Shown one piece after another: positions 2,607-60,382 of a DNA stretch of 64,000 bases. The number at the start of each line of letters is the position of its first letter. The first letter of the stretch is position 1. A program made the position numbers and the translations under genes. Source of the DNA: Octopus sinensis (lineage: Eukaryota). Where the stretch lies: the NCBI RefSeq assembly GCF_006345805.1, contig NC_043026.1, positions 13,619,579 to 13,683,578 on the forward strand, in the 5' to 3' direction. Below the pieces are notes generated by a model. It did not search any database and was not told the DNA's origin. It worked only from the letters and a program-made list of their open reading frames with translations.

Positions 2607-5600
2607 TTGCAGCGTGGAAGGTGTTTGTAAGCCATTTAAGAAACACAGAAAAGCCGTTCGATTCACTTCAACATTTAAGTTTAATTTGTCAGAATATTTT
2701 CGTCGCTTTAAGACCGCGAGCTGTTCATTGACAAAAATCCATGCTGAATAAGGTTTATATATATATATATATACAATTGCAGCGTGGAAGGTGTTTATAA
2801 GCCATTTAAGAAACACACAAAAGCCGTTCGATTCACTTCAACATTTAAGTTTAATTTGTCAAAATATTTTCATTGCTTTAAGACCGCGACCTGTTCATTG
2901 ACAAAAATCCATGCTGAATAAGGTTTATATATATATATATAATTGCAGCGTGGAAGGTGTTTGTAAGCCATTTAAGAAACACACAAAAGCCGTTCGATTC
3001 ACTTCAACATTTAAGTTTATTTGTCAGAATATTTTCGTCGCTTTAAGACCGCGACCTGTTCATTGACAAAAATCCATGCTGAATAAGGTTTATATATATA
3101 TATATATACAATTGCAGCGTGGAAGGTGTTTATAAGCCATTTAAGAAACACACAAAAGCCGTTCGATTCACTTCACTTCAACATTTAAGTTTAATTTGTC
3201 AAAATATTTTCATTGCTTTAAGACCGCGACCTGTTCATTGACAAAAATCCATGCTGAATAAGGTTTATATATATATATATAATTGCAGCGTGGAAGGTGT
3301 TTATAAGCCATTTAAGAAACACACAAAAGCCGTTCGATTCACTTCAACATTTAAGTTTAATTTGTCAAAATATTTTCATTGCTTTAAGACCGCGACCTGT
3401 TCATTGACAAAAATCCATGCTGAATAAGGTTTATATATATATATATATACAATTGCAGTTGCAGCGTGGAAGGTGTTTATAAGCCATTTAAGAAACACAC
3501 AAAGCCGTTCGATTCACTTCAACATTTAAGTTTATTTGTCAAAATATTTTCATTGCTTTAAGACCGCGACCTGTTCATTGACAAAAATCCATGCTGAATA
3601 AGGTTTATATATATATATATATACAATTGCAGCGTGGAAGGTGTTTATAAGCCATTTAAGAAACACACAAAGCCGTTCGATTCACTTCAACATTTAAGTT
3701 TAATTTGTCAAAATATTTTCATTGCTTTAAGACGCGACCTGTTCATTGACAAAACCATGCTGAATAAGGTTTATATATATATATATATATACAATTGCAG
3801 CGTGGAAGGTGTTTATAAGCCATTTAAGAAACACACAAAAGCCGTTCGATTCACTTCAACATTTAAGTTTAATTTGTCAAAATATTTTCATTGCTTTAAG
3901 ACCGCGACCTGTTCATTGACAAAAATCCATGCTGAATAAGGTTTATATATATATATATATATACAATTGCAGCGTGGAAGGTGTTTATAAGCCATTTAGA
4001 AACACACAAAAGCCGTTCGATTCACTTCAACATTTAAGTTTAATTTGTCAAAATATTTTCATTGCTTTAAGACCGCGACCTGTTCATTGACAAAAATCCA
4101 TGCTGAATAAGGTTTATATATATATATATATACAATTGCAGCGTGGAAGGTGTTTATAAGCCATTTAAGAAACACACAAAGCCGTTCGATTCACTTCAAC
4201 ATTTAAGTTTAATTTGTCAAAATATTTTCATTGCTTTAAGACCGCGACCTGTTCATTGACAAAAATCCATGCTGAATAAGGTTTATATATATATATATAA
4301 TTGCAGCGTGGAAGGTGTTTATAAGCCATTTAAGAAACACACAAAAGCCGTTCGATTCACTTCAACATTTAAGTTTAATTTGTCAAAATATTTTCATTGC
4401 TTTAAGACCGCGACCTGTTCATTGACAAAAATCCATGCTGAATAAGGTTTATATATATATATATATACAATTGCAGCGTGGAAGGTGTTTTAAGCCATTT
4501 AAGAAACACACAAAAGCCGTTCGATTCACTTCAACATTTAAGTTTAATTTGTCAAAATATTTTCATTGCTTAAGACCGCGACCTGTTCATTGACAAAAAT
4601 CCATGCTGAATAAGGTTTATATATATATATATACAATTGCAGCGTGGAAGGTGTTTATAAGCCATTTAAGAACACACAAAAGCCGTTCGATTCACTTCAA
4701 CATTTAAGTTTAATTTGTCAAAATATTTTCATTGCTTTAAGACCGCGACCTGTTCATTGACAAAAATCCATGCTGAATAAGGTTTATATATATATATATA
4801 TACAATTGCAGCGTGGAGGTGTTTATAAGCCATTTAAGAAACACACAAAAGCCGTTCGATTCACTTCAACATTTAAGTTTAATTTGTCAAAATATTTTCA
4901 TTGCTTTAAGACCGCGACCTGTTCATTGACAAAAATCCATGCTGAATAAGGTTTATATATATATATATATACAATTGCAGCGTGGAAGGTGTTTATAAGC
5001 CATTTAAGAAACACACAAAAGCCGTTCGATTCACTTCAACATTTAAGTTTAATTTGTCAAAATATTTTCATTGCTTTAAGACCGCGACCTGTTCATTGAC
5101 AAAAATCCATGCTGAATAAGGTTTATATATATATATATATACAATTGCAGCGTGGAAGGTGTTTATAAGCCATTTAAGAAACACACAAAAGCCGTTCGAT
5201 TCACTTCAACATTTAAGTTTAATTTGTCAAAATATTTTCATTGCTTTAAGACCGCGACCTGTTCATTGACAAAATCCATGCTGAATAAGGTTTTATATAT
5301 ATATATATACAATTGCAGCGTGGAAGGTGTTTATAAGCCATTTAAGAAACACACAAAAGCCATTCGATTCACTTCAACATTTAAGTTTAATTTGTCAAAA
5401 TATTTTCATTGCTTTAAGACCGCGACCTGTTCATTGACAAAAATCCATGCTGTATAAGGTTTATATATATATATATATACAATTGCAGCGTGGAAGGTGT
5501 TTATAAGCCATTTAAGAAACACACAAAAGCCGTTCGATTCACTTCAACATTTAAGTTTAATTTGTCAAAATATTTTCATTGCTTTAAGACCGCGACCTGT

Positions 5601-6620
5601 TCATTGACAAAAATCCATGCTGAATAAGGTTTATATATATATATATAATTGCAGCGTGGAAGGTGTTTATAAGCCATTTAAGAAACACACAAAAGCCGTT
5701 CAATTCACTTCAACATTTAAGTTTAATTTGTCAAAATATTTTCATTGCTTTAAGACCGCGACCTGTTCATTGACAAAAATCCATGCTGAATAAGGTTTAT
5801 ATATATATATATATACATTGCAGCGTGGAAGGTGTTTATAAGCCATTTAAGAAACACACAAAAGCCGTTCGATTCACTTCAACATTTAAGTTTAATTTGT
5901 CAAAATATTTTCATTGCTTTAAGACCGCGACCTGTTCATTGACAAAAATCCATGCTGAATAAGGTTTATATATATATATATACAATTGCAGCGTGGAAGG
6001 TGTTTATAAGCCATTAAGAAACACACAAAAGCCGTTCGATTCACTTCAACATTTAAGTTTAATTGTCAAAATATTTTCATTGCTTTAAGACCGCGACCTG
6101 TTCATTGACAAAAATCCATGCTGAATAAGGTTTATATATATATATATATACAATTGCAGCGTGGAAGGTGTTTATAAGCCATTTAAGAAACACACAAAAG
6201 CCGTTCGATTCACTTCAACATTTAAGTTTAATTTGTCAAAATATTTTCATTGCTTTAAGACCGCGACCTGTTCATTGACAAAAATCCATGCTGAATAGGT
6301 TTATATATATATATATATACAATTGCAGCGTGGAAGGTGTTTATAAGCCATTAAGAAACACACAAAAGCCGTTCGATTCACTTCAACATTTAAGTTTAAT
6401 TTGTCAAAATATTTTCATTGCTTTAAGACCGCGACCTGTTCATTGACAAAAATCCATGCTGAATAGGTTTATATATATATATATATACAATTGCAGCGTG
6501 GAAGGTGTTTATAAGCCATTTAAGAAACACACAAAAGCCGTTCGATTCACTTCAACATTTAAGTTTAATTTGTCAAAATATTTTCGTCGCTATAAGACCG
6601 CGACCTGTTCACTGACAAAA
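2607..6620 (-). repeat. Left arm of foldback element 1: 24 tandem ~169-bp units, each with a variable (TA)n tract and a hammerhead-like core on the minus strand
   Basis: gcagcgtggaagg recurs 24 times from 2609 to 6493 (spacing 163-176 nt). Confidence 0.95.
6569..6619 (-). ncRNA. Type I hammerhead ribozyme-like motif with G3-C8 swapped core
   Basis: Minus strand: UUUGUCA / GUGAACA / G / GUCGC-ggucuuaua-GCGAC / GAAA A UA UUU / UGACAAA. 7-bp helix I, 5-bp helix II closed by G10.1-C11.1, palindromic helix III (AAUAUU). Activity untested. Confidence 0.72.
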
Positions 6621-6897
6621 TTCCGTGCTGCATCACGAAGTTTTGTCAGTGAACAGGTTTAGCTGGACGGATGGACTTGTTTATTCTGTCTTGTACTTAT
6701 TCTATCGATCTGTTTTGCCGAACCGACATATTAAAAAAGATTAAAAAAGAAACTTTACTCATGGGACAAACAGTAATAACAACAAGCAAGCTACAACTAT
6801 AATGATGATAATAATAATAATGGTTTAATTTGTAAAAATATTTTCGTCGCTTTAAGACCGTGACCTGTTCACTGACAAAAATCTGTGTTGCATACAG

Positions 6898-7361
6898 GTG
6901 AACAGGTCGCGGTCTTAAAGCGACGAAAATATTTTGACAAATTAAACTTAACTGTTGAAGTGAATCGAACGGCTTTTGTGTGTTTCTTAAATGGCTTATA
7001 AACACCTTCCACGCTGCAATTGTATATATATATATATATAAACCTTATTCAGCATGGATTTTTGTCAATGAACAGGTCGCGGTCTTAAAGCAATGAAAAT
7101 ATTTTGACAAATTAAACTTAAATGTTGAAGTGAATCGAACGGCTTTTGTGTGTTTCTTAAATGGCTTACAAACACCTTCCACGCTGCAATTATATATATA
7201 TATATATATATAAACCTTATTCAGCATGGATTTTTGTCAGTGAACAGGTCACGGTCTTAAAGCGATGAAAATATTTTGACAAATTAAATTTAAATGTTGA
7301 AGTGAATCTAACAGTTTTTGTGTGTTTCTTAAATGGCTTACAAACACCTTCCACGCTGCAA
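6898..7361 (+). repeat. Right arm of foldback element 1: three inverted ~169-bp units
   Basis: Reverse complement of the left-arm unit; ends ...ccttccacgctgcaa, mirroring the start at 2607. Confidence 0.93.
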
Positions 7362-7554
7362 TTGTTTTCGTTCCAGCACATGATCTCAGATCAAGTCACT
7401 TGCTATGCAAGTACATCTCCGTAATCTGTTTTGCTTATTTTTTTGATTCCTTGTAATATACGAATGCACAATGACTAAGGAATTCGCCTCATGGCCATGT
7501 CGTGTTCAGTTCAGTCTCACTGCATGACACCTTTGCCAAATGCCTTCTACCTAT

Positions 7555-7785: not shown

Positions 7786-8008
7786 TACCATTGCCTTTGG
7801 CCAACCAATGCCATATGAGCAAATTTGGTTGATGGAAACTGCAAGAAAGACCATCCTATATCGAACGGCTTTTGTGTGTTTCTTAAATGGCTTACAAACA
7901 CCTTCCACACTGCAATTGTTGAAAATTGTTTATTTAGAGCATAAAGCCATCATTTACATAATCTCTTGAACTTATTAATTATGCATTTATTTATTTATTT
8001 ATTTGCAG

Positions 8009-9054: not shown

Positions 9055-9100
9055 AGGGCATCTTTTGAAGTTTCTCCTTTTCTGTGTATGATTTTTGTTT

Positions 9101-11394
9101 TGTGAGGTATTTTTGCCATCTCAATATGGCTAACCACTAAGGGTGGGTGTTACTGTAGCTTCTAGCCCCAGGAGAACATCATCTCCAGCTGGCTTTAGGC
9201 ACACTATCTGTGCCCTATCGGTATTTGCAAAGGGAGGTCATCCTTCCCTTGTCAACCTAAGTGATACGCACAGACTGCAATTTCTAGGTATTGACCCGTC
9301 ATCAGCGTACGACAATCACCGGTTTTCGATGAAGGGAGTCCCAATGCAAATCCTTATATCCTTTTTCCAGTAACTTTTCGTCACTGATCTTGAAAAACTG
9401 TATGCAAGCAATAATAAATCTCTTAACTAGATGTAAACAGTAACTGCACGACAACGTGAGGTATATTTGCCATCTCAATATGGCTAACCACTAAGGGTGG
9501 GTGTTGCAAATACCTTAAGGGCACAGAAAGTGTGCCTAAAGCCAGCTGGAGACGATGTTCTCCTGGGGCTACAAGCTACAGTAACACCCACCCTTAGTGG
9601 TTAGCCATATTGGGATGGCAAATATACCTCACATTGTCGTGCAGTTACTGTTTATACTTCGTTCAGAGATTTATTATTGCTTGCATACAGATTTTCAAGA
9701 TCAGTGACGTAAAGGTACTGGAAAAAGGATATAAGGATTTGCATTGGGACCCTTCCATCGAAACCGATGATTGTCGTACGCTGATGACGGGTCAATACCT
9801 AGAAACTGCAGTCTGTGCGTATCACTTAGGTTGACAAGGGAAGGATGACCTCCCTTTGCAAATACCTTAAGGGCACAGAAAGTGTGCCTAAAGCCAGCTG
9901 GAGACGATGTTCTCCTGGGGCTACAAGCTACAGTAACACCCACCCTTAGTGGTTAGCCATATTGGGATGGCAAATATACCTCACATTGTCGTGCAGTTAC
10001 TGTTTATACTTCGTTCAGAGATTTATTATTGCTTGCATACAGATTTTCAAGATCAGTGACGTAAAGGTACTGGAAAAAGGATATAAGGATTTGCATTGGG
10101 ACCCTTCCATCGAAACCGATGATTGTCGTACGCTGATGACGGGTCAATACCTAGAAACTGCAGTCTGTGCGTATCACTTAGGTTGACAAGGGAAGGATGA
10201 CCTCCCTTTGCAAATACTGATAGGGCACAGAAAGTGTGCCTAAAGCCAGCTGGAGACGATGTTCTCCTGGGGCTACAAGCTACAGTAACACCCACCCTTA
10301 GTGGTTAGCCATATTGAGATGGCAAATATACCTCACATTGTCGTGCAGTTACTGTTTATACTTCGTTCAGAGATTTATTATTGCTTGCATACAGATTTTC
10401 AAGATCAGTGACGTAAAGGTACTGGAAAAAGGATATAAGGATTTGCATTGGGACCCTTCCATCGAAACCGATGATTGTCGTACGCTGATGACGGGTCAAT
10501 ACCTAGAAACTGCAGTCTGTGCGTATCACTTAGGTTGACAAGGGAAGGATGACCTCCCTTTGCAAATACCTTAAGGGCACAGAAAGTGTGCCTAAAGCCA
10601 GCTGGAGACGATGTTCTCCTGGGGCTACAAGCTACAGTAACACCCACCCTTAGTGGTTAGCCATATTGAGATGGCAAATATACCTCACATTGTCGTGCAG
10701 TTACTGTTTATACTTCGTTCAGAGATTTATTATTGCTTGCATACAGATTTTCAAGATCAGTGACGTAAAGGTACTGGAAAAAGGATATAAGGATTTGCAT
10801 TGGGACCCTTCCATCGAAACCGATGATTGTCGTACGCTGATGACGGGTCAATACCTAGAAACTGCAGTCTGTGCGTATCACTTAGGTTGACAAGGGAAGG
10901 ATGACCTCCCTTTGCAAATACCTTAAGGGCACAGATAGTGTGCCTAAAGCCAGCTGGAGACGATGTCCTCCTGGGGCTACAAGCTACAGTAACACCCACC
11001 CTTAGTGGTTAGCCATATTGGGATGGCAAATATACCTCACATTGTCGTGCAGTTACTGTTTATACTTCGTTCAGAGATTTATTATTGCTTGCATACAGAT
11101 TTTCAAGATCAGTGACGTAAAGGTACTGGAAAAAGGATATAAGGATTTGCATTGGGACCCTTCCATCGAAAACCGGTGATTGTCGTACGCTGATGACGGG
11201 TCAATACCTAGAAACTGCAGTCTGTGCGTATCACTTAGGTTGACAAGGGAAGGATGACCTCCCTTTGCAAATACCGATAGGGCACAGAAAGTGTGCCTAA
11301 AGCCAGCTGGAGACGATGTTCTCCTGGGGCTACAAGCTACAGTAACACCCACCCTTAGTGGTTAGCCATATTGGGATGGCAAAAATACCTCACA
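9101..11394. mobile_element. Foldback element 2: inverted arm of ~1.15 units plus ~5.4 tandem 352-bp hammerhead-containing units, flanked by a TSD
   Basis: Starts tgtgaggtatttttgccatc and ends gatggcaaaaatacctcaca; flanks atttttgtttt at 9091-9101 and 11394-11404; the 352 period is confirmed by repeated ORFs at 9610/9962/10314/10666. Confidence 0.93.
9775..9819 (+). ncRNA. Type I hammerhead-like motif (repeated at cores 9781, 10133, 10485, 10837, 11190; minus-strand copy at 9273-9305)
   Basis: CGUACG / CUGAUGA / C GGGU-caau-ACCU A / GAAAC-UGCA-GUC / UGUGCG. Full core, 6-bp helix I, palindromic UGCA loop; the base of helix II is a non-canonical C.A. Confidence 0.75.
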
Positions 11395-11442
11395 TTTTTG
11401 TTTTGTTTTCACTTTTTTATTTTTTGTGGCTGTTTGCATAAT

Positions 11443-12243
11443 GTTACCTAGAAATTATGTTAAAAACTGCTGTTCAAACCGAAAAGATCCATATCTTACA
11501 AACTATAGAATTTTCTCAATAAAGCCAAGAGAAAAAGATGTTTTATAAACACATTCTACCTGTATACGAAGTTTAAAAGTGTTTAGTTACGTGGAAATTA
11601 TGTTAAAAACTGCTGTTCAAACCGAAAAGATCCACATCTTACAAACTATAGAATTTTCTCAATAAAGCCAAGAGAAAAAGATGTTTTATAAACACATTCT
11701 ACCTGTATACGAAGTCTAAAATTCTTTAGTTACCTAGAAATTATGTTAAAAACTGCCGTTCAAACCGAAAAGATCCGAAAGTTAGGGGTAGGGTTAGGGG
11801 TGGGGGAAGGGTATCTTTTTTTCTTCACAAATGTAAATAAACCCAATCTGTTTCTTAAACGAGGGACATATTCATACGGCACAGAATGTTTTTTTTTTAC
11901 CTCAATGGACGTCAGTGATTGGTTGAAATTGCAGAAATGCAAGAAATTAAAGACCAAATATCTTACAAACTATAGAATTTTCTCAATAAAGCCAAGAGAA
12001 AAAGATGTTTTATAAACACATTCTACCAGAATACGAAGTTTAAAAGTGTTTAGTTACCTAGAAATTATGTTAAAAACTGCCGTTCAAACCGAAAAGATCC
12101 ATATCTTACAAACTATAGAATTTTCTCAATAAAGCCAAGAGAAAAAGATGTTTTATAAACACATTCTACCAGAATACGAAGTTTAAAAGTGTTTAGTTAC
12201 CTAGAAATTATGTTAAAAACTGCCGTTCAAACCGAAAAGATCC
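11443..12243. repeat. Unclassified dispersed element with tandem ~143-bp subunits and a ttaggg-like tract
   Basis: Repeated ttacctagaaattatgttaaaaactgccgttcaaaccgaaaagatcc units; related copies at ~40340-40665 and ~63500-63850. Confidence 0.75.
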
Positions 12244-13793: not shown

Positions 13794-14026
13794 CCAATCA
13801 CTTGCAGACCTACCAGGACAAAGAATCGTCCTCTTCTCCTATGGTTCCGGCCTGGCCTCTTCCATGTTCTCCCTCCACATCACCCAGGACAATTCCAGTG
13901 GATCTTCCCTTGAGAAACTCTACCACTCGATAAGTGGCATCAGAACTCGGTTAGAATCTCGGGTGAAATTCAGTCCCAAAGAATTTGAGGAAACGTTGCA
14001 ACTCCGCGAGAAGACACATCATATCG
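13794..14026 (+). CDS. HMGCS1: HMG-CoA synthase internal exon (QSLADLPGQRIVLFSYGSGLASSMFSL...LREKTHHI)
   Basis: ttctccag acceptor, gtaggt donor; hallmark FSYGSGLA motif; phase 2 to 1. Confidence 0.97.
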
Positions 14027-15135: not shown

Positions 15136-16539
15136 AAAAAAAAAAAAAATGTATGGTTGTGTGTTTTAAACTGTGATTTTTTTTTTAATTGAAAAATATT
15201 AAAAAAATTTCTTTAAACTTGGAAAATTATAAAAAAAAAGGTTCTTTTTGTAATCTTATAAATTGCTGTGGGAAAATACAAATTTGCAAAAATTTTCTGA
15301 AAATTCCATAAAATCAAAAAACTATGAGGGTGTTCAATGGCAGGTTTGAAGCAAAATTCCACTGTTTAATTCAACCTGCTAGAAAATGTAGCCAAGTCTG
15401 CCGTAGGTAACATTGTTTGTGTGTATCATTATCTCCATATCTACTCACTCAGATTCCTTGTATAGTCACTCTTTACCCATCAGACTTATTCCTCGGTGAA
15501 GATTTCAGGGTGTAGGTTCAAATCCTGTAAGTGCAACTAAGCGTTTTCTATACCAAGAATCTCTGGATCTTATCTGTTGACTCTATGTATGTATGTGTGT
15601 GTGTGTAATATATATGGTAAGTAGCTTGCTTGGAGGCACAATCCCACTGCGTGGCATCTTGGGCAAGTGTCTTCTGCTATAGCCCCGGGCCGACTAATGC
15701 CTTGTGAGTGGATTTGGTAGATGGAAACTGAAAGAAGCCTGTCATTATATATATATAATTACACACAACAGGATTCTTTCAGTTTCTGTTTACCAAATCC
15801 ACTCATGAGACTTTTGTCAGCCTGAAGCTATTGTAGAAGACACTTACCCAGGGTGCCACATGATGAGGCTGAACCCAGAACCATGTGGTTGGGAAGCAAT
15901 CTTTTTACCACACAGCCACACCTGCACCTATAAAAAAGCACATGGCCAGATGTTTGTTCATGGTGACCCCATTTGTCATCCCATCTACTGAAAGAAACCC
16001 TGTGGGGTGTGATGAGAACGGTGACATCATGTGCAGACCTAACCAGTTGGAAGCACAGTAAATTATAAGTTTCATCTGTCACATATATTTCAAACCGTGC
16101 AGTTCTGCAACAGGATTGAATAGTCGTCTGAGAGGCCATGGGCAGAAGGTCAGGAATGCCATTGACGATGCAAAAGCTCAATCTGGCACTTTCTCCTTTA
16201 GTTATGGCAACGAGGGTTCTTGTTGTTCTGGTCAGTGGGACAGCCTGCTCATGAAATTAATATACATATGGCTGAGTACTCCACAGACACATGTAGCTTT
16301 AATGTAGTCCACAGGGAGAATTGGCGTGATACAGTGTTGCAAGGCTGGCCCTTTGAAATACAGGTACTACTCATTTTTGCCAGCTGAGTGGACTGGAGCA
16401 AATAAAGTGTCTTGCTCAAGGACTCAGTGCATTGCCAGGAATTGAACTCATGACAGAGAGAATGCCAGATTGAGCCATTTGCTCAGATGATTTCTGTCCC
16501 CTAGTGCTTTTGCATTGTCAGTGGCATTCCTGGCCTTCC

Positions 16540-17130
16540 TATTTCTTTATTGCCCCCAAGGGGCTAAACATAGAGGGGACAAACAAGGACAGACAAATGG
16601 ATTAAGTCGATTATATCGACCCCAGTGCATAACTGGTACTTATTTAATCGACCCCGAAAGGATGAAAAGCAAAGTCGACCTCGGCGGAATTTGAACTTAG
16701 GACGTAACGGCAGGCGAAATACCTATTTCTTTATTACCCACAAGGGGCTAAACATAGAGGGGACAAACAAGGACAGACAAATGGATTAAGTCGATTATAT
16801 CGACCCCAGTGCATAACTGGTACTTATTTAATCGACCCCGAAAGGATGAAAAGCAAAGTCGACCTCGGCGGAATTTGAACTTAGGACGTAACGGCAGGCG
16901 AAATACCTATTTCTTTATTACCCTCAAGGGGCTAAACACAGAGGAGACAGACGGATTAAGTTGATTATATCAACTTCAGTGCGTAACTGGTACTTAATTT
17001 ATTGACCTCGAAAGGATGAAAGGCAAAGTCGACCTCGGCTGAATTTGAACTCAGAACGTAACGGTAGGCGAAATACAGCTACGCATTTCACCCGGCGTGC
17101 TAACGTTTCTGCCAGCTCGCCGCCTTAACC
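16540..17130 (-). mobile_element. SINE family B tandem array (~3 units)
   Basis: Repeated ctatttctttattacccacaaggggctaaac...gaaatac units; one head (ccagctcgcc) at the right end. Confidence 0.85.
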
Positions 17131-18309: not shown

Positions 18310-18476
18310 TATGACAGGCTTCTTTCAGTTTCCGTCTACCAAATCCACTCACAAGGCATTGGTCGGCCCGAGGCTATAGTAGAAGACACTTGCCCAAGAT
18401 GCCACACAGTGGGACTGAACCCGGAACCATGTGGTTGGTAAGCAAGCTACTTACCACACAGCCACTCCTGCGCCTA
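18036..18476 (-). mobile_element. SINE family A copy
   Basis: Family match. Confidence 0.85.
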
Positions 18477-19618: not shown

Positions 19619-19770
19619 CTCCATATGTTCCTATTGGATCCACAGATCACCTGTACCCTGGCACTTGGTACCTGACTGAGGTGGACGATAAACATCGACG
19701 GAAATACGCACAGAAGCCTGCCTCTCCTCTTTGTGATGGTCACGCTAACATGGAGCAGCACATGGCACAG
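19619..19770 (+). CDS. HMGCS1: HMG-CoA synthase internal exon ([33 protein letters not shown]...)
   Basis: ggcag acceptor, gtaact donor; conserved GTWYLxxVDxKHRRxY C-terminal motif; phase 1 to 0. Confidence 0.95.
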
Positions 19771-32329: not shown

Positions 32330-32887
32330 TATGTTTGTGTTTGTCCCCCTAGCATTGCTTGACAACCGATGCTGGTGTGTTTATGTCCCCGTTACTTAAC
32401 GGTTCGGCAAAAGAGACCGATAGAATAAGTACTGGGCTTACAAAAGAATAAGTCCTGGGGTCGAGTTGCTCGATTAAAGGCGGTGCTCCAGCATGGCCGC
32501 AGTCAAATGACTGAAACAAAGTAAAAGAGTAAGAGTATATATATACACGCACACACATATTCACACATACATACGTACATGTGCATACATATTTATATGC
32601 ACACGTATAATGCACAACAGACAAAATGAGTTGAGTTTTTTTTTTGTTTTTTGTTGTTTTGGTGGGTGAGAGCACGTGGGCTGGGGTGGAGCATTTTTCT
32701 TTTTCTTTTTTTTTTGCTGTTACAAACTGATATTTTTATATATGTATGTATATAATTTTCTGTTTTATTTTATATTTTCCTTTCTTTTTCACTGAATTTG
32801 TTATTTCTCAGAAGGGAAGAAAATTTGTTTTCGTTGTAGATTTTTTTTTTTCATCTGTTCCCCTTTATATAATCTATATATAATGTA

Positions 32888-32921
<34 letters not shown>

Positions 32922-33380
32922 GATTTAATTGAAGAAATGAGAATGCAAATCGACGTAACATTTCCATCATGAAACATTGTTTATTCCATTCCACAGCCTG
33001 GTGCAACCATCTCGTTCGCCAGCCCTCAGTCAAAATCGTCCAACCCATGCTAGCATGGAAAGCAGACGCTAAACGATGATGATGATGATATAAAGTTTTT
33101 ATATCTATATTATATTGTGTGGAATTTGATTTAGTATTTCTAAATTGAATTTTTTATCCTTGTAAGTTTGGATTTTATTCCCTCAAATAATAATTATATA
33201 TATATATAGGCGCAAGAGTGGCTGTGTGGTAAGTAGCTTGCTAAACAACCACATGGTTCCGGGTTCAGTCCCGCTGTGTGGCATCTTGGGCAAGTGCCTT
33301 CTGCTATAGCCCCGGGCCGACCAATGCCTTGTGAGTGGATTTGGTAGACGGAAACTGAAAGAAGCCTGTCGTATGTATGT

Positions 33381-33422: not shown

Positions 33423-33967
33423 TGTGTTTGTCCCCCTAGCATTGCTTGACAACCGATGCTGGTGTGTTTATGTCCCCGTTACTTAACGGTTCGGCAAAAG
33501 AGACCGATAGAATAAGTACTGGGCTTACAAAGAATAAGTCCTGGGGTCGAGTTGCTCGATTAAAGGCGGTGCTCCAGCATGGCCGCAGTCAAATGACTGA
33601 AACAAAGTAAAAGAGTAAAGAGTATATATATACACGCACACACATATTCACACATACATACGTACATGTGCATACATATTTATATGCACACGTATAATGT
33701 ACAACAGACAAAATGAGTTTTTTTTTTTGTTTTTTGTTGTTTTGGTGGGTGAGAGCACGTGGGCTGGGGTGGAGCATTTTTCTTTTTCTTTTTTTTTTGC
33801 TGTTACAAACTGATATTTTTATATATGTATGCATATAATTTTCTGTTTTATTTTATATTTTCCTTTCTTTTTCACTGAATTTGTTATTTCTCAGAAGGGA
33901 AGAAAATTTGTTTTCGTTGTAGATTTTTTTTTTTCATCTGTTCCCCTTTATATAATCTATATATAAT

Positions 33968-34008
<41 letters not shown>

Positions 34009-34490
34009 GATTTAATTGAAGAAATGAGAATGCAAATCGACGTAACATTTCCATCATGAAACATTGTTTATTCCATTCCACAGCCTGGTGCAACCATCTC
34101 GTTCGCCAGCCCTCAGTCAAAATCGTCCAACCCATGCTAGCATGGAAAGCAGACGCTAAACGATGATGATGATGATATAAAGTTTTTATATCTATATTAT
34201 ATTGTGTGGAATTTGATTTAGTATTTCTAAATTGAATTTTTTATCCTTGTAAGTTTGGATTTTATTCCCTCAAATAATAATTATATATATATATAGGCGC
34301 AAGAGTGGCTGTGTGGTAAGTAGCTTGCTAAACAACCACATGGTTCCGGGTTCAGTCCCGCTGTGTGGCATCTTGGGCAAGTGCCTTCTGCTATAGCCCC
34401 GGGCCGACCAATGCCTTGTGAGTGGATTTGGTAGACGGAAACTGAAAGAAGCCTGTCGTATGTATGTATATATATATATATGTATGTGTG
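32330..34490 (+). repeat. Two-copy 1087-bp tandem duplication bounded by SINE A copies (32136, 33207, 34294)
   Basis: Duplicate ORFs offset by 1087 nt (33183/34270; 33048/34135). Confidence 0.92.
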
Positions 34491-36909: not shown

Positions 36910-37480
36910 TGGTGATCTGGCAGAAATGTTAGCATGCCGCGCGAAATGCTTAGCGGTATTTCGTCTACCATTACGTTTTGAGTTCAAATTCTGCTGAGGT
37001 CGACTTTGCCTTTCATCCCTTCAGGGTCGATAAATTAAGTACCAGTTACGCACTGGGGTCGATGTAATCGACTTAATCCCTTTGTCTGTCCTTGTTTGTC
37101 CCCTTTGTTTAGCCCCTTGTAGGTAGTAAAGAAATAGGTATTTCGTCTGCCGTTACGTTCTGAGTTCAAATTCCGCCGAGGTCGACTTAGCCTTTCATCC
37201 CTTCGGGGTCGATAAATTAAGTACCAGTTACGCACTGGGGTCGATGTAATCGACTTAATCCCTTTGTCTGTCCTTGTTTGTCCCCTTTGTTTAGCCCCTT
37301 GTAGGTAGTAAAGAAATAGGTATTTCGTCTGCCGTTACGTTCTGAGTTCAAATTCCGCCGAGGTCGACTTAGCCTTTCATCCCTTCGGGGTCGATAAATT
37401 AAGTACTAGTTATGCACTGGGGTCGATGTAATCGACTTAATCCCTTTGTCTGTCCCCTCTATGTTTAGCCCCTTGTGGAC
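36910..37480 (+). mobile_element. SINE family B trimer
   Basis: One head and three B-box-to-tail units. Confidence 0.85.
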
Positions 37481-41170: not shown

Positions 41171-41699
41171 ACAATAATATAAAGAATAACAAGATTTATC
41201 TTTCTTTCTGGGAGTGATGGTTATATTTATAGCATTCAAGCTTTTTGCTTCTTTCTTTCTTTCTGTCTTTTCTTTCTCTCTATTCTATAATTAATATGTA
41301 AACGTATACGGGCAACGTCAGACAAACTGTCTATCTCTACCAGGTCTGTGAGAATTGCTTGTGGCCATGCTTGTTTAAACGGAGTCAGGCCTATTTTGGA
41401 TGAATGCCAGTTCGGTGAAAGGAACAATTTTGATGCGGTGTGGAGCCTGGATAACTTACTGCCGTGGACTTAGTTTAACATCGCAAACACCAAACATACA
41501 TACACACATATAGCAAAAAATTCGTGTAAAAAAACCCCAAAAAACAGAATCTCAGAAGATAAAAAAGAACCATTTTTCATATAAATATATTAATAAAGAA
41601 TTAATATAGAATTTCATCCACCAAAAGGACGAAGGTCAGAAAAGTAAAAAAATATAAAACCCACACTAATTATAAAAAAACACTAAAATCTTTCGGTAC

Positions 41700-42349
41700 T
41701 ACTAGCGAACAGTGGTCCCGGTGCGCGCACTCGCATAGTCGCACATCCGCGCTAGCTAGTCGTGACTAGTCGATCCTTACTTTGTATTTTTGTGTATTAT
41801 TTACTTTGTTTAATAAATTATTTATTTTGTGGGTACTACTGGAGAACAGCGGTCCCGGTGCGCGCACTCGCGCTGGCTAGTCGTGACTAGTCGATCCTAC
41901 GTCTACCTAGCAAAGTAAATAAATTATTTATTTTGTGTTTTATTTACTTCGCTAGGTAGACGTTGCAGAATCGACTAGTCACGACTAGCTAGCGCGGATG
42001 CGCGACTACGCGAGTGCGCGCACCGGGACCACTGTGTTTTTGTGTGTTATTTTACTTTCTGTTTTATTTACTTTGCTAGGTAGACGTTGCAGGATCGACT
42101 AGTCACGACTAGCTAGCGCGGATGCACGATTAATTGAATGCGCGCACCGGGACCTCTGTTCTCCAGTAGTGCCCGTCTACTTTCCTACCTACATTCACCT
42201 CTAACGTTTAAAAATAGTCTACATGCCAAATTTAGTTTCGTATTTTGATGCTAGCTTTACTCTCACGAAGCAGTGCCCGTAATTACACCGCAAGGAAACA
42301 TTCGGAGTTACCCCGTCGTTAGTTTCGCTTTTGCTTTTCTTCACTCTCA
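41700..42349. promoter_or_regulatory. CpG-rich palindromic region, probable (possibly bidirectional) promoter
   Basis: Dense CpG in an otherwise CpG-poor window; 2+2 inverted copies of ggtcccggtgcgcgcactcgc...ctagtcgtgactag; lies just upstream of an ATG exon with a gtaagt donor. Confidence 0.5.
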
Positions 42350-49904: not shown

Positions 49905-50575
49905 GTGGCGAGCTGGCAGAAACGTTAGCACGCCGGGTGAAATGCGCAGCCGTATTTCGTCTACCGTTACGTTCTGAGTTCAAATTCCACCGAGGTCGAC
50001 TTTGCCTTTCATCCTTTCGGGGTCGATAAATTAAGTACCAGTTACGCACTGGGATTGATATAATCGACTTAATCCATTTGTCTGTCCTTGTTTGTCCCCT
50101 CTGTGTTTAGCCCCTTGTGGGCAATAAAGAAATAAGAAACGTTAGCACGCCGGGCGAAATGCGTAGCTGTATTTCGTCTACCGTTACGTTCTGAGTTCAA
50201 ATTCCACCGAGGTCGACTTTGCCTTTCATCCTTTCGGGGTCGATAAATTAAGTACCAGTTACGCACTGGGATTGATATAATCGACTTAATCCATTTGTCT
50301 GTCCTTGTTTGTCCCCTCTGTGTTTAGCCCCTTGTGGGCAATAAAGAAATAAGAAACGTTAGCACGCCGGGCGAAATGCGTAGCCGTATTTCGTCTGCCG
50401 TTACGTTCTGCGTTCAAATTCCGCCGAGGTCGACTTTGCCTTTCATCCGTTCGGGGTCGATTAAATAAGTACCAGTTACGCATTGGGGTCGATATAATCG
50501 ACTTAATCCGTTTGTCTGTCCTTGTTTGTCCTCCGTGTTTAGCCCCTTGTGGGTAGTAAAGAAATAGGTACTTCT
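49905..50575 (+). mobile_element. SINE family B array (~4 units; some junctions at the A-box)
   Basis: Junction gaaataagaaacgttagcacg at ~50130 and ~50350. Confidence 0.87.
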
Positions 50576-51254: not shown

Positions 51255-52140
51255 CTTTGCGGTATTTCTTCTGCCGTTACGTTCTGAGTTCAAATTCCGT
51301 CGAGATCGACTTTGCCTTTCATCCTTTCGGGGTCGATAAATTAAGTACCAGTTACGCACTAGGGGTCAATATAATCGACTTAATCCGTTTGTCTGTCCTT
51401 GTTTGTCCTCTCTGTGTTTAGCCCCTTGTGGGTAGTAAAGAAATAGGTATTTCATCTGCCGCTACGTTCTGAGTTCAAATTCCGTCGAGGTCGATTTTGC
51501 ATTTCATCCTTTCGGGGTCGATAAATTAAATACCAGTTGCGCACTGGGGTCGATATAATCGACTTAATCCGTTTGTCTGTCCTTGTTTGTCCTCTCTATG
51601 TTTAGCCCCTTGTGGGTAGTAAAGAAATAGGTATTTCGTCTGCCGTTACGTTCTGAGTTCAAATTCCGTCGAGGTCGATTTTGCATTTCATCCTTTCGGG
51701 GTCGATTAAATAAATACCAGTTACGCACTGGGGTCGATATAATCGACTTAATCCGTTTGTCTGTCCTTGTTTGTCCTCTCTATGTTTAGCCCCTTGTGGG
51801 TAGTAAAGAAATAGGTATTTCGTCTGCCGCTACGTTCTGAGTTCAAATTCCGTCGAGGTCGACTTTGCCTTTCATCCTTTCGGGGTCGATAAATTAAGTA
51901 CCAGTTGCGCACTGGGGATCGATGTAATCGACTTAATCCGTTTGTCTGTCCTTGTTTGTCCTCTCTGTGTTTAGCCCCTTGGGGGTAGTAAAGAAATAGA
52001 AATAGGTATTTCTTCTGCTGTTACGTTCTGAGTTTAAATTCCGCCGGGATCGATAAATTAAGTACCTGTTGCGTACTGGGGTCGATCTAATCTCGACTGG
52101 TCCCCTCCCCCCAAAATTTCAGGCCTTGTGCCTAGAGTAG
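51255..52140 (+). mobile_element. SINE family B array (~4-5 units)
   Basis: agtaaagaaataggtattt junctions. Confidence 0.87.
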
Positions 52141-53785: not shown

Positions 53786-53795
53786 AATATATATA

Positions 53796-54650: not shown

Positions 54651-54702
<52 letters not shown>

Positions 54703-55539
54703 ATAATAATAATATTAAGGAATGGCCTTGATAGGCCATTTGACCCACTAGAAAGAGCAGCTAAACTGAAACCGCTAAATAGTTGTAATTCAGAAACCAA
54801 AGGAAAATAAAAATAAAAACATTTACCCTTATCATCTTTGGACTATGCATAGTTTCAACATACATATTGGCAAACCAATTTAATTAAATTAAATTAAATC
54901 TGTTTGCCACTGGTCTGTCTCGTCAGCAAAGAAGCCAGGGAAATATATATCCACGAGGCGACAGTATCAACGCCTTGAGAATATATATTCTAAATTTTCA
55001 AAATCTACCGTCACCGCGCCAACTTGAATTTTCTTGAATTCTTGAATTTTTTGTTACCCTGATATTGATTAATATATATATATATATATATACATTGGCG
55101 TTAGGAAGGGCATCCAGCCATAGAAACATTGCCAGATCAGACTGGGCCTGGTGCAGCCTTCTGGCTTCCCAGACCCCAGTTGCACCGTCCAACCCATGCC
55201 AGCATGGAAAGCGGACGCTAAACAATGATGATGATACATATATATATATCTGTGTGTGCATGTGTCTTTGTGTTTGCCACTCCCACTTGATAACCAGTGT
55301 TGGTTTGTTTACATTCCCATAACTTAGCTGTTTGGCAAAAGAGACTGATAGGATAAGTACCCCATTCAAAAAAAATATATATATATACTGATGTCAATTC
55401 ATTTGAATAAAAAACATTTGAGGGATGGCCACAGTCCAGTGACTTAAACTAGTAAAAGCTAAAAGGTAATTGCTGAAGTATAGAGTGTAGATTGAATTAT
55501 CTCAAACGTTAAGAGAAAGAAATGTAACTTTTTCCTGCA

Positions 55540-56363
55540 ATAAATTCATCTAAACCAACCCTTTTCATTGACACTTAACATAGCTACTGTGGGTCCTCAA
55601 TTTACTATTTCATTTGTGTAGACCCTTAGAAATCTTATATGGACCCTGGTTGAGAAGCACTGAGTTAAACCCTTCAAGGTGGTGCCTCTGCATAGCCACA
55701 ATCCAGTAACTGATTTTGCAATAAATACATCTAAACCAACCCTTTTCATTGACACTTAACATAGCTACTGTGGGTCCTCAATTTACTATTTCATTTGTGT
55801 AGACCCTTAGAAATCTTATATGGACCCTGGTTGAGAAGCACTGAGTTAAACCCTTCAAGGTGGTGCCTCTGCATAGCCACAATCCAGTAACTGATTTTGC
55901 AATAAATACATCTAAACCAACCCTTTTCATTGACCACTTAACATAGCTACTGTGGGTCCCCAATTTACTATTTCACTTGTGTGGACCCTTAAAAATCTTA
56001 TATGGACCCCCAGGTGTCATGTGGACCCTGGTTGAGAAGCACTGAGTTAAGCCCTTCAAGGTGGTGCCTCAGCATAGCCACAATCCAGTAACTGATTTTG
56101 CAATAAATACATCTAAACCAACCCTTTTCATTGACACTTAACATAGCTACTGTGGGTCCCCAATTTACTATTTCACTTGTGTGGACCCTTAAAAATCTTA
56201 TATGGACCCTGGTTGAGAACCACTGAGTTAAACCCTTCAAGGTGGTGCCTCAGCATAGCCACAATCCAGTAACTGATTTTGCAATAAATACATCTAAACC
56301 AACCCTTTTCATTGACACTTAACATAGCTACTGTGGGTCCCCAATTTACTATTTCATTTGTGT
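55540..56363. repeat. ~178-bp tandem repeat (~4.5 units) containing a hAT-MITE-like end (ggttgagaagcactg) fused to a SINE-tail fragment
   Basis: Direct repeat reading. Confidence 0.88.
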
Positions 56364-56482
56364 GCTTACGGCCATATCACGTTGAAAGCACCGGTTCTCG
56401 TCTGATCACCGAAGTTAAGCAACGTTGAGCCTAGTCAGTACTTAGATGAGTGACCGCTTGGGAAACCTAGGTGCAGTAAGCG
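56364..56482 (+). rRNA. 5S: 5S rRNA-derived full-length copy (probably retroposed; no oligo-T terminator)
   Basis: gcttacggccatatcacgttgaaagcaccggttctcgtctgatcaccgaagttaagc...agtacttagatgagtgaccgcttgggaaacctaggtgcagtaagc; terminal GCUUAC/GUAAGC helix intact; box-C G-to-A changes relative to typical animal 5S. Confidence 0.93.
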
Positions 56483-56496
56483 TAACACATAAGTGG

Positions 56497-56793: not shown

Positions 56794-56810
56794 ATTTCAT
56801 TTGTGTAGAC

Positions 56811-58280: not shown

Positions 58281-58292
58281 CTTCTTCTTCTT

Positions 58293-58324
<32 letters not shown>

Positions 58325-59615: not shown

Positions 59616-60040
59616 GACCATCTGTGTAAACACATTTAAAAAAAGAAAAAACTTTTACAGTCTGTCGGCCCATTTGATGCCATACCAGTCAATGGTTACT
59701 GCTGTAATGAGCTGAGGGTTTTGTTTTTATTAGACAGATGGTTGCAAATTGTGAAACGGGAGGATGTTTACATAAACAAGGTGCAGACATAGCTGTGTGG
59801 TTGAAAAAATTAGCTTCACAGCTATGAGGTGCATTCCAGAAGTTTTGAGACTTTTTCAGTAGAGACATTTATTAATTTCAAACTGTGGCTGTGTGGTAAG
59901 TAGCTTGCTTACGAACCACATGGTTCCGGGTTCAGTCCCACTGCGTGGCACCTTGGGCAAGTGTCTTCTACTATAGCCTCGGGCCGACCAAAGCCTTGTG
60001 AGTGGATTTGGTAGACGGAAACTGAAAGAAGCCCGTCGTA

Positions 60041-60070
<30 letters not shown>

Positions 60071-60072
<2 letters not shown>

Positions 60073-60382
60073 CTTTATTCAAAGCAGCAGAAAATTCAAC
60101 AAAACCTGTTACTCTGAGTTTCCCATTGCCGTTCGTCGGCAAAACCTGTTACTCTGAGTTTCCCATTGCCGTTCGTCGGCAAAACCTGTTACTCTGAGTT
60201 TCCCGTTGCCGTTCGTCGGACAGTTTTTGCGAGCAAAAACTGTCTGACGAACGGCAACGGGAAACTCAGAGTAACAGGTTTTGTTGAATTTTCTGCTGCT
60301 TTGAATAAAGCATATTACTCTACCACTGGTATTTGAGTACTCTTTTTTTCCACCTTGTTTCACATTTATGTGTTTACTCCGG
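60071..60382. mobile_element. Foldback element 3: ~80-bp palindrome with a triplicated 40-bp hammerhead core
   Basis: tactttattcaaagc...cagtttttgc-ga-gcaaaaactg...gctttgaataaagca, plus ~70 nt of right-arm tail. Confidence 0.88.
60234..60283 (+). ncRNA. Type I hammerhead-like motif
   Basis: CAAAAACUGU / CUGACGA / A CG-GCAA-CG G / GAAACU-cag-AGUA / ACAGGUUUUG. 9 of 10 pairs in helix I, GNRA-capped 2-bp helix II with an A.G base, GUA site. Confidence 0.68.

Follow-up and report, generated by a model that had tools for sequence, protein, structure and literature searches.

The window analyzed here, a stretch of 64,000 nucleotides of Octopus sinensis DNA, matches O. sinensis CM016888.1 at 100% identity and contains three tandem arrays with unequal inverted arms. 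These arrays are real and were seen in two independent assemblies. HMGCS1 introns contain elements 1 and 2, whose foldback junctions are also present in an independent O. vulgaris assembly. TRF reported a 169-bp repeat (23.8 copies, 2607-6630) and an inverted array (2.7 copies, 6899-7365) in element 1, a 352-bp repeat (5.4 copies, 9504-11396) in element 2, and a 40-bp repeat (3 copies, 60100-60219) in element 3. No RT or GIY-YIG ORF was found within the window, in agreement with the original prediction that it holds no autonomous partner. The features are as follows.

2607-6660 (-): element 1 left arm, 23.8 x 169 bp (~145-nt unit plus (TA)n linker), no hammerhead (TRF, sequence)
6661-6822: element 1 centre, unrelated, 162 bp, in which 33 bp are a piece of a dispersed SINE-like repeat
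6823-7361 (+): element 1 right side, ending ...CCACGCTGCAATTGT (sequence)
7362-7425: 64-bp block adjoining element 1, missing together with element 1 in O. bimaculoides
7860-7915 (+): solo copy of the element 1 unit, 56 nt, 5'-truncated, with the same 3' end (...CACTGCAATTGT; sequence)
9092-9100: element 2 target-site duplication (TSD), left copy, TTTTTGTTT, repeated at 11395-11403
9101-9505 (-): inverted left arm of element 2, 1.15 units, with the ribozyme sense outward (inverted repeat; hammerhead at 9267-9311)
9504-11394 (+): element 2 right arm, a tandem of 5.37 units of 352 bp, every unit with one type I hammerhead (TRF; hammerhead matches)
11395-11403: element 2 TSD, right copy, TTTTTGTTT
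54835-54932 (-): second type I hammerhead, unrelated, absent from the original prediction (descriptor match; Rfam)
60071-60230 (-): left arm of element 3 with three 40-bp units, core box CCGACGA in every copy
60233-60315 (+): element 3 right arm, one unit, holding the hammerhead look-alike at 60240-60277, the sole copy with CUGACGA
60316-60382 (+): one-sided tail of element 3, 67 nt, then (TA)n

The element 2 hammerhead

The type I hammerhead core is complete in all six copies of element 2, five on the plus strand in the right arm (9775-9819, 10127-10171, 10479-10523, 10831-10875 and 11184-11228) and one on the minus strand in the left arm (9267-9311). Therefore, the ribozyme sense runs outward in both arms. 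The motif reads cgtacgCUGAUGA-CGGGUCAAUACCUA-GAAA-CUGCAG-UC-ugugcg, and a strict hammerhead descriptor returned 7 matches in the window versus 0.05 expected per shuffled window. Furthermore, among 7 distinct family-2 sequences, 96.1% of helix cells were paired compared to at most 59% when the partners were slid, and two-sided compensatory changes were found across copies: G-C became A-U in helix I, the helix III palindrome changed from UGCA to UCGA, and helix II also carries such changes. The helices thus covary, and with the complete cores these results supported the proposal of a tandem retrozyme with hammerheads in element 2.

Helix III has 2 bp and carries a palindromic tetraloop as its cap, and helix II has a C.A mismatch at its base, as in HHR_Amex2, which also combines a capped 2-bp helix III with a mismatch at this position. 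The family-2 palindromes were computed to be able to form intermolecular duplexes of 8-12 bp, and element 2 dimers within multimeric transcripts should self-cleave. The unit RNA is weakly structured (z = -1.7), and an 86-nt search of the motif with Rfam Hammerhead_1 gave no score even at E<=10. Older family-2 copies carry CCGA in place of CUGA; therefore, individual loci decay neutrally. The hammerhead cleavage site coincides with none of the insertion ends or inner junctions.

The hammerhead at 54835-54932 has a long helix II and a helix III formed by the palindrome CUAUGCAUAG. It is hosted by a ~390-bp single-copy insert between (TA)n tracts that is not a foldback, and it scored 15.4 bits over the full Rfam Hammerhead_1 model, below the gathering score of 34.

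Insertion anatomy of the three families

The two arms of element 2 (9101-9505 and 9504-11394) are inverted copies with 94-97% identity, and both end outward in ...CCTCACA. The 9-bp direct repeat TTTTTGTTT that flanks them is a true TSD (length about 9-11 bp), because O. bimaculoides keeps the empty site with the target in single copy (L002 ~18310-18330). The inner junction, ggtgggtgtt/gcaaatacc, is identical in O. vulgaris. A second, 80%-diverged family-2 foldback (L001 14013-14735) is flanked by a perfect 10-bp TSD, TAATAAGATA, and its O. bimaculoides site is likewise empty with a single target copy. Its outer ends lie at different unit positions, 174 and 75, and since its TSD is perfect all the same, a terminal inverted repeat (TIR) is not needed. 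Both family-2 insertions contain an inverted inner copy.

In element 1, the left arm carries its constant end ...GCTGCAA outward and is closed by a small hairpin turn (6597-6660); its interior units hardly differ from one another, and the three outermost units are variants. The right side comprises, in order, an oppositely oriented 77-nt unit fragment, a hairpin turn at ~6885-6900 and 2.7 outward-reading units, with 6150-6612 pairing with 6898-7365. Both arms of elements 1 and 2 had been predicted to stop at the same nucleotide, which holds for element 2 but not for element 1, where the ends lie within 4 nt of each other and not on an identical base. The centre of element 1 is also found in O. 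vulgaris (L003 19087-19255), as is the solo 56-nt copy. The block at 7362-7425 is either a one-sided tail of the element 1 insertion or flank deleted in O. bimaculoides; in O. vulgaris, it occurs as two inverted copies around the element (L003 18855-18918 and 19484-19548).

Furthermore, the element 1 family includes a non-foldback trimer (L001 9385-9902) with a TSD of about 10 bp, ~AATATT(T)CTA, and 3 extra nt at the 5' junction. The trimer is absent from O. vulgaris and from O. bimaculoides, where the site is empty with a single target copy. Where the constant side of a family copy has flank, the boundary reads ...GCTGCAA(TTGT) in 4 of 4 cases, while the opposite ends vary (full head, 56-nt truncation or inverted copy). 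The unit has an 11-nt TIR, TGCAGCRTGGA. A hammerhead had also been predicted in element 1. However, CUGANGA...GAAA...UH was absent on both strands with one core mismatch and loops <=200 nt allowed, a search that covers all circular permutations, and Rfam reported no ribozyme at E<=10.

Element 3 is flanked by (TA)n tracts, and its inverted pairs are 60068-60137 with 60246-60315 and 60180-60230 with 60233-60283. The right arm outruns the left by 67 nt, in line with the (TA)n setting and the ~70-nt shorter left arm described originally. The hammerhead assigned to this element did not withstand scrutiny. In the window, CUGACGA occurs in the innermost right-arm copy only, the other three copies reading CCGACGA, and the essential U4 is missing in 5 of the 6 family copies. 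Helix II has 2 bp, the tandem copies have no helix I, and the apparent helix I of the right-arm copy is the stem of the central hairpin. By chance, a shuffled window would contain 0.22 matches of such relaxed quality, and Rfam found no ribozyme at E<=10. An O. vulgaris copy (L003 40296-40492), absent from the other species compared, has CCGACGA in both arms and a broken helix III. The lone CUGA is probably derived, because a single C-to-T change at a CpG separates it from the family-majority CCGA. The O. vulgaris copy is an independent insertion with the same tail and left-arm end as the window copy; both have non-matching ends and a one-sided tail of 50-67 nt. Since these two insertions share their boundaries, the element 3 foldback is inherited from the master copy and not remade at each insertion.

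Mobility and integration

All three families are mobile. Unrelated loci carry independent insertions of each family, and precise O. bimaculoides empty sites with target duplications were found at three loci. These observations contradict, as a full explanation, the view that the arrays are ordinary immobile satellites to which local DNA rearrangement (inverted duplication, fork stalling or unequal crossover) gave a new shape. That view draws on the homogenised array interiors, on the large copy-number differences between sister species (5.37 versus 0.37 units in the element 2 right arm, about 24 versus 1 in the element 1 left arm) and on a tandem triplication in O. vulgaris that takes in 43 bp of true flank. 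It is very improbable for the insertions themselves and holds for the post-insertion phase only. DNA-level expansion and contraction clearly followed insertion, because sister species differ by whole units and the triplication includes flank; the copying from multimeric RNA that was proposed originally therefore cannot be the whole source of array size. Also hard to maintain is the original picture of three hammerhead-bearing multimers forming one ribozyme-defined system, which is largely refuted and most improbable. Element 2 qualifies as a hammerhead retrozyme and one element 3 copy can be drawn as a minimal hammerhead, but the absence of a core in element 1 under every topology, the defects of the element 3 helices and U4, the probably derived state of its single CUGA, the chance expectation for such a match and the negative Rfam searches all stand against it. 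Because the hammerhead occurs in one family of the three, the ribozyme cannot unite them, and a shared hammerhead system is not supported.

We consider it reasonably likely that these are three mutually unrelated families of short, non-coding, non-autonomous retroposons of O. sinensis, integrated through target-primed reverse transcription in the manner of Penelope-like elements (PLEs), and that only family 2 is a retrozyme. A staggered cut of a T/A-rich or (TA)n target would give rise to the ~9-11-bp duplication. A multimeric (or circular, rolling) RNA template would then yield cDNA in which the units run head to tail, the outer end constant and the inner end variable, and a template jump or priming on the other target strand would add the inverted inner copy. 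The outcome would be unequal arms with both 3' ends outward and, in some cases, a one-sided tail, after which the arrays would grow and shrink as DNA. Elements 1 and 3 would share this route with element 2 without a ribozyme. We infer the RNA intermediate, the two-strand priming and the choice of a PLE over a LINE enzyme.

Unequal inverted arms built from tandem repeats are the classic anatomy of FB elements. Their presence here, with short unrelated centres, could point to foldback DNA transposons or MITEs (Drosophila FB or Mutator-like) moved by a transposase, with tandem-unit TIRs, a 9-10-bp duplication and the element 2 hammerhead as a passenger. The TSDs (9-11, 10 and ~10 bp) are also of Mutator/Foldback length, the outer termini of elements 1 and 2 match, the element 1 unit has its 11-nt TIR, and Mutator and other TIR families are active in O. 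vulgaris (PMC13282606). Furthermore, both element 2 arms end on one base, an outcome not expected from random internal priming on a multimer. As originally expected, the elements of the window are mobile and non-coding, carry their constant (3') ends outward and would usually be annotated as satellites or MITEs. However, a transposase is quite unlikely as the agent, given the second family-2 foldback with its perfect TSD and no TIR, the one-armed trimer with its extra junction nucleotides, the 5'-truncated element 1 copy sharing one end only, and the unmatched ends and one-sided tails of both element 3 insertions. Moreover, the compensatory changes that preserve the family-2 hammerhead helices argue for RNA-level selection. 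The same retroposition could have been carried out by a LINE (RTE, CR1 or Dong-R4), L1-style twin priming on multimeric RNA producing the inverted arm. Such priming would leave an anatomy identical to that of a PLE, and it predicts 3'-ends-out inverted repeats in which the outer end of one arm is arbitrary, as seen in the second family-2 foldback. The targets are T-rich, and LINEs are the most active retroelements of O. vulgaris (PMC13282606). We regard this as unlikely: type I hammerheads and retrozymes are tied in the literature to PLE pLTRs and not to LINEs, (TA)n bias and one-sided tails are described for PLEs, and a poly(A) or microsatellite 3' tail is absent from every insertion examined.

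Relation to known systems

The tandem-plus-inverted shape common to the three elements is real and matches published PLE insertions (Evgen'ev & Arkhipova 2005; Craig et al. 2021, PMC8557442); in itself it is a known PLE pattern and not a new one. Such insertions are marked by 5' truncation and partial tandems, by a neighbouring inverted copy that is itself 5'-truncated, by variable TSDs, and by a one-sided 30-40-bp tail and a microsatellite bias, with (TA)n targets for Naiads, whose hosts include Octopus; nonautonomous PLEs of Chlamys form multicopy head-to-tail insertions (PMC8557442). The elements described here, likened to PLEs by architecture and not by sequence, share head-to-tail multimers, adjacent inverted inner copies, constant outer 3' ends with variable inner ends, and hammerheads with a palindromic helix III. 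Their TSDs likewise measure ~9-11 bp, element 3 and perhaps element 1 have a one-sided tail, and the 54835 hammerhead, like element 3, sits in a (TA)n target. Unlike PLEs, the elements have no RT or GIY-YIG ORF, their units are non-coding and 145-352 nt long, and their tails measure 50-67 nt instead of 30-40 nt. Two of the three families have no hammerhead, as in Naiads. A total of 31 PLE families with 336 recently active copies is reported for O. vulgaris (PMC13282606).

The nearest relatives of element 2 are the metazoan non-LTR retrozymes (Cervera & de la Pena 2020, PMC7229834; axolotl Rtz_353/HHR_Amex2, mussel 350-390-bp repeats), which consist of tandem 150-450-bp repeats with type I hammerheads, have TSDs longer than 4 bp and include vertebrate representatives that cluster with PLE pLTRs (bioRxiv 10.64898/2026.07.22.740005). 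Like them, element 2 has a 352-bp tandem unit with one type I hammerhead, a GC content of 44%, a TSD above 4 bp and no LTR, PBS, PPT or ORF. Newt satellite 2 and Schistosoma Sm-alpha also consist of tandem ~330-bp type I hammerhead repeats with a weak helix III needing dimers (PMC7229834), but the arrays described here are unrelated in sequence and form short, dispersed insertions with defined TSDs. In contrast to described retrozymes, the element 2 family has a cephalopod host, is known here from DNA sequence, and offers insertion boundaries with empty sites and an inverted inner copy in both insertions. Inverted copies are undescribed in PMC7229834, where the word "inverted" occurs 0 times, and in the preprint (bioRxiv 10.64898/2026.07.22.740005), where it is limited to the reference list, and no cephalopod retrozyme is reported in the searchable literature. 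In sum, the element 2 family is a new member, from a cephalopod, of the metazoan non-LTR retrozymes, and elements 1 and 3 are ribozyme-less retroposon families that share its architecture.

Inverted arrays and the HMGCS1 gene

A padded query of three exon translations matched HMG-CoA synthase 1 (HMGCS1) of Octopus sinensis at 99% identity. At 100% identity, the window matches the O. sinensis HMGCS1 locus (L001; GCA_006345805.1, CM016888.1); adding 15866 to an L001 position gives the window position. Consecutive introns of the gene house elements 1 and 2. Two orthologous HMGCS1 loci, L002 from O. bimaculoides and L003 from O. vulgaris, served for comparison. HMGCS1 differs in length among the three species (O. 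sinensis, 28.2 kb; O. vulgaris, 23.5 kb; O. bimaculoides, 13.7 kb), and intronic repeat insertions, elements 1 and 2 among them, appear to account for most of the difference.

HMGCS1 exons and layout of the three elements (window positions)
~2390-2518: HMGCS1 exon
8009-~8165: HMGCS1 exon
~13800-14020: HMGCS1 exon
~19620-19720: HMGCS1 exon
2607-6630: element 1, 23.8 tandem units, followed by a small hairpin turn, an unrelated 162-bp centre, a second turn and 2.7 inverted units to 7361
9101-9505: element 2, left inverted arm of 405 bp
9504-11394: element 2, abutting right arm of 1.89 kb
60071-60382: element 3, an inverted repeat with its centre at 60231/60232; the left arm holds three 40-bp units, the right arm a single unit and, on that side only, a 67-nt extension

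The arrays and inverted arms were found where the original prediction had placed them. About 15 tandem arrays occur in the window, and only those of elements 1, 2 and 3 have an adjacent inverted arm; the remaining close inverted pairs are dispersed SINE-like copies of ~400 bp. Palindromic long-read chimeras were ruled out as the source of these foldbacks (tandem-unit elements with two unequal inverted arms), since two independent assemblies agree on the inner junctions and these family shapes are seen again at other loci. The absence of an autonomous partner from the window, also predicted, was borne out: no ORF of at least 150 aa carried the domains of one, neither a reverse transcriptase nor an endonuclease was found, and a Pfam search of ten window ORFs of 117-189 aa matched only the last HMGCS exon.

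Several other repeats lie in the same 64 kb. One SINE-like sequence recurs in tandem arrays at no fewer than five loci, suggesting that short elements in this genome commonly form head-to-tail multimers. Two positions in the window, 1087 bp apart, match a single O. vulgaris flank, which points to a tandem duplication of ~1.1 kb in O. sinensis.

Other features of the window
11443-11776, 11779-11812 and 11958-12243: two 143-bp tandem arrays right after element 2, with telomere-like repeats (gttaggggtagggttaggggtggggg) in the stretch between
16538-17076, 27708-30291, 36955-37455, 49918-50566 and 51261-52054: SINE-like GGTATTTCGTCTGCCGTTACGTTCTGAGTTCAAATTCCGCCGAGGTCGAC... in tandem, periods of 169-217 bp, at least five loci
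32550-33063 and 33637-34150: the two positions to which the O. vulgaris flank maps
41698-42170: small inverted repeat with 69-nt arms, 190 bp apart and 96% identical, possibly a MITE
56364-56482 (+): full-length 5S rRNA match (104 bits), perhaps a 5S gene or the head of a 5S-derived SINE, directly downstream of two 181-bp tandem arrays (55536-56009, 56022-56364)

Hammerhead motifs

We searched for type I hammerheads with a descriptor in the order CUGANGA, helix II, GAAA, helix III, UH and helix I (open). In its strict form it matched all six units of element 2 (five on the plus strand in the right arm, one on the minus strand in the left arm), where chance would give 0.05 matches per window (100 dinucleotide shuffles). 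The motif reads cgtacg-CUGAUGA-C[GGGU-CAAU-ACCU]A-GAAA-C-UGCA-G-UC-ugugcg and has the same 2-bp helix III, tetraloop cap and mismatch at the base of helix II as the hammerheads of axolotl retrozymes (PMC7229834). A search of the window at Rfam gathering scores returned 5S rRNA as its only match and no hammerhead. At E<=10, both regions searched gave no ribozyme family and only miRNA-like matches, caused by the inverted repeats themselves, and RF00163 (Hammerhead_1) did not match the element 2 motif in 86 nt even at that threshold. Minimal hammerheads with a short helix III have been found in the literature by descriptors (RNAmotif; PMC7229834), and we thus read the RF00163 miss as speaking neither for nor against element 2 function.

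Comparison within family 2 (the relatives of element 2) bears on the same point. We aligned seven distinct sequences from O. sinensis and O. vulgaris, comprising element 2, a ~80%-diverged insertion at L001 14013-14735 and O. vulgaris orthologues; in this small set, with the structure drawn from one member, 96.1% of cells were paired, versus at most 59% when the partners were slid. Changes on both sides affect three pairs, located in helix I (G-C to A-U), helix II and the loop of helix III. The last change turns UGCA into UCGA, and ACUGCAGU and ACUCGAGU are each an 8-nt palindrome, as predicted for a hammerhead that acts as a dimer; the palindromes are able to form duplexes of 8-12 bp. U4 is changed to C in older family-2 copies, indicating that individual loci decay. 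On the strength of its core and compensatory changes, element 2 is predicted to belong to a bona fide type I hammerhead family. A strongly structured, rod-like RNA was rejected for its unit, which folds weakly better than shuffled sequences (z = -1.73).

The original prediction had assigned hammerheads to all three elements, and two of the three claimed ribozymes are absent. In element 1, no hammerhead was found on either strand with one core mismatch, relaxed helices and loops of up to 200 nt. Such loops cover all permuted topologies in a tandem array, and type II/III or permuted hammerheads were likewise not found within that limit. The nearest approach to the core is the 7-mer CUGAAUA, with CUGACAA found in a minority of units. 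Element 3 yielded one relaxed descriptor match (60240-60277; chance expectation 0.22 per window), in which helix II has 2 bp and the supposed helix I is the stem of the central hairpin; its tandem copies are without helix I. Five of the six family-3 copies, namely the other three window copies and both arms of an independent O. vulgaris copy (L003 40296-40492), read CCGACGA at the core, and in that O. vulgaris copy C15.2 is changed to A and helix III is broken. A single C-to-T step at a CpG turns CCGA into CTGA, and the lone CUGA box of element 3 is thus probably derived.

A candidate type I hammerhead motif that had not been listed occurs at 54835-54932 (-), ctttgCUGACGA...GAAA-CUAUGCAUAG-UC-caaag. 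It is unrelated to element 2 and matches the strict descriptor; its helix III is a 10-nt palindrome and its helix II is long. Rfam Hammerhead_1 scores it at 15.4 bits, under the gathering score of 34. The motif sits in a single-copy, non-foldback insert of ~390 bp (~54700-55095) between two (TA)n tracts.

Empty sites, ends and later changes

O. bimaculoides has a precise empty site for element 2 (...gtgtatgaTTTTTGTTTtgttttcac...), which establishes the 9-bp repeat at its borders (up to 11 bp, depending on end assignment) as a true target-site duplication (TSD). The diverged family-2 foldback at L001 14013-14735, upstream of the window, is flanked on both sides by the 10-mer TAATAAGATA, present once at the empty site in O. 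bimaculoides; a version with part of the sequence deleted occurs in O. vulgaris (L003 14170-14393). A non-foldback trimer of the element 1 family (L001 9385-9902) also has an empty site in O. bimaculoides (...aaatgtaatatttctattt...), with ~AATATT(T)CTA duplicated and 3 extra nt at the 5' junction, and is missing from O. vulgaris as well. Conversely, the TA-rich site orthologous to the O. vulgaris family-3 copy is without insertion in O. sinensis. TSDs at the three loci thus measure 9-11, 10 and ~10 bp, too few loci for judging whether their length is fixed.

The borders of element 1 allow either of two readings. Element 1 and the 64 bp on its right (7362-7425) form a block that is missing in O. 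bimaculoides, and in O. vulgaris the 64-bp block lies on both sides of the element in inverted orientation. It is either a one-sided insertion tail with a decayed TSD of ~11 bp (CTGTYTTGYTT), or true flank that was deleted in O. bimaculoides and co-duplicated in O. vulgaris, with a 6-bp TSD, TTGTT(T).

The constant side of family 1 has the same end, ...GCTGCAA(TTGT), at all four boundaries, namely the two outer ends of element 1, the trimer and the 56-nt solo fragment at 7860-7915, and the opposite ends vary. The inner turns of the family lie at the unit head (...CCATGCTGCAT), and at two unrelated loci the units are linked by the same sequence containing (TA)n, which indicates that the copied template was already a multimer. 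The ~145-nt unit (e.g. L001 9392-9535) has 11-nt complementary termini, TGCAGCRTGGA ... TCCAYGCTGCA, forming a panhandle in the predicted fold. On its opposite strand, weak A-box-like and B-box-like (GTTCGATTC) motifs can be seen by eye. A tRNA-derived SINE head was considered for element 1 and rejected, as ARAGORN finds no tRNA in the window.

Both of the two independent family-2 insertions are foldbacks with unequal arms and the ribozyme sense outward. Their inner junctions differ (unit positions 1/80 in one, inside the hammerhead in that at L001 14013-14735), and the outer ends of the latter, older copy fall at unit positions 174 and 75; in element 2 both arms stop at the same base, which random internal priming on a multimer would not predict. 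The differing junctions and ends indicate that the inverted arm was made anew at each insertion and that a terminal inverted repeat was not required. None of these ends or junctions coincides with the GUC| cleavage site, which argues against a linear cleaved monomer as template; an uncleaved multimer and a religated circle both fit. In family 3, the left-arm end and the right tail are the same in both insertions, indicating that the foldback belongs to the master copy.

The arrays have changed since insertion. O. vulgaris carries element 2 as well, with an unchanged inner junction and a right arm of 130 bp (0.37 unit) versus 5.37 units in O. sinensis, a difference of a whole number of units. 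At L003 20930-21640 there are three tandem copies of a ~247-bp unit, which comprises 43 bp of genuine flank and ~200 bp from the left arm of element 2; the copies join at catcag|catc, within the hammerhead box. DNA-level tandem duplication has clearly crossed the insertion boundary here. Element 1 occupies 4.75 kb in O. sinensis versus ~0.9 kb, otherwise arranged, in O. vulgaris. Within the O. sinensis array, interior units are near-identical and edge units variant, a qualitative comparison, as many 1-nt indels defeated ungapped alignment. Differences among the units at 2607-6630 are mainly such 1-base indels and may represent long-read assembly errors rather than biology. Together, the copy-number differences between species, in assemblies that are both long-read based and may have collapsed some arrays, the triplication and the uniform interior indicate that array length was largely shaped at the DNA level and is no measure of how long an RNA template was.

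Relation to retrozymes and Penelope-like elements

Metazoan non-LTR retrozymes were defined by Cervera & de la Pena 2020 (PMC7229834). We looked for tandem units of 150-450 bp with a type I hammerhead in each, low GC and TSDs longer than 4 bp. Element 2 has this format, with 5.4 units of 352 bp plus 1.15 inverted units, a GC content of 44%, a hammerhead per unit, and TSDs of 9-11 bp and, in its relative, 10 bp, each with an O. bimaculoides empty site; it carries only accidental ORFs of 47-93 aa and no LTR, PBS or PPT. No report of cephalopod hammerheads or retrozymes was found in the literature searched, nor did the retrozyme literature searched describe inverted arms in insertions. Copies elsewhere were sought by exact-pattern scans, with two patterns in metagenome contigs and also in viral contigs, and by a protein-space search with an accidental 80-aa ORF of the element 2 unit, aimed at genomic and transcript contigs; none turned up.

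The anatomy has a precedent in Penelope-like elements (PLEs), whose insertions are partial tandems truncated at the 5' end, frequently next to an inverted copy that is itself 5'-truncated (Craig et al. 2021, PMC8557442). One end of them also bears a tail of 30-40 bp, their TSDs vary and they are biased towards microsatellites; nonautonomous PLEs insert as multiple head-to-tail copies, and Naiads, which are present in Octopus, favour (TA)n and have no hammerheads (PMC8557442). PLEs of O. vulgaris have been recently active (PMC13282606). Scored for 5' truncation, head-to-tail copies, an adjacent inverted copy, variable TSDs, a one-sided tail and a microsatellite or T/A-rich target, the three families taken together match this signature. 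From its sequence, element 2 is best classed as a putative cephalopod retrozyme inserted in an already known way rather than as an unprecedented type of system; elements 1 and 3 share its insertion signature and lack a ribozyme. The original observation is partly confirmed and its reading as a retrozyme/Penelope system partly supported; a hammerhead system common to all three elements is not.

A broader, tentative reading, which we hold at less than even confidence, is that short multimeric non-coding RNAs in octopus, whether or not they carry a hammerhead, may be mobilised by Penelope-type machinery priming both target strands, retrozymes being one branch of ribozyme-optional "multimer retroposons". 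LINE twin priming on multimeric RNA would produce the same anatomy, and we regard it as unlikely. Movement by a foldback or Mutator-like DNA transposon is quite improbable: it would fit the shape, the ~10-bp TSDs and the matching terminal inverted repeats of elements 1 and 2, but the second family-2 foldback ends at positions 174 and 75, neither family-3 copy has matching ends, and family 1 includes one-ended and truncated copies down to a solo fragment. The extra nucleotides at a 5' junction and the RNA-level covariation in family 2 also speak against it. Rearrangement of a satellite without any insertion is contradicted by the empty sites and seems very improbable indeed.

Under the Penelope-type reading, the same anatomy in two ribozyme-less families within the same 64 kb suggests that the architecture reflects the integration machinery rather than the ribozyme, in line with a proposal in the literature that hammerheads may be no more than parasites of PLEs (PMC8557442). 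Whether metazoan retrozymes are parasites of PLEs is a current open question. Li et al. 2026 tied vertebrate retrozymes to PLE pLTRs by sequence, arguing from similarity in Xenopus, and stated that neither invertebrates nor the life cycle had been covered (bioRxiv 10.64898/2026.07.22.740005). The PLE-type tandem and inverted anatomy of the element 2 family, with its empty-site-verified TSDs, provides independent structural evidence in a cephalopod. Such elements are expected to inflate introns, as in HMGCS1, and to be mislabelled as satellites or MITEs. If the broader reading is true, integration would not need the hammerhead, and the empty sites seen across species would provide the first evidence from insertion junctions linking non-LTR retrozymes to PLE-style integration in an invertebrate.
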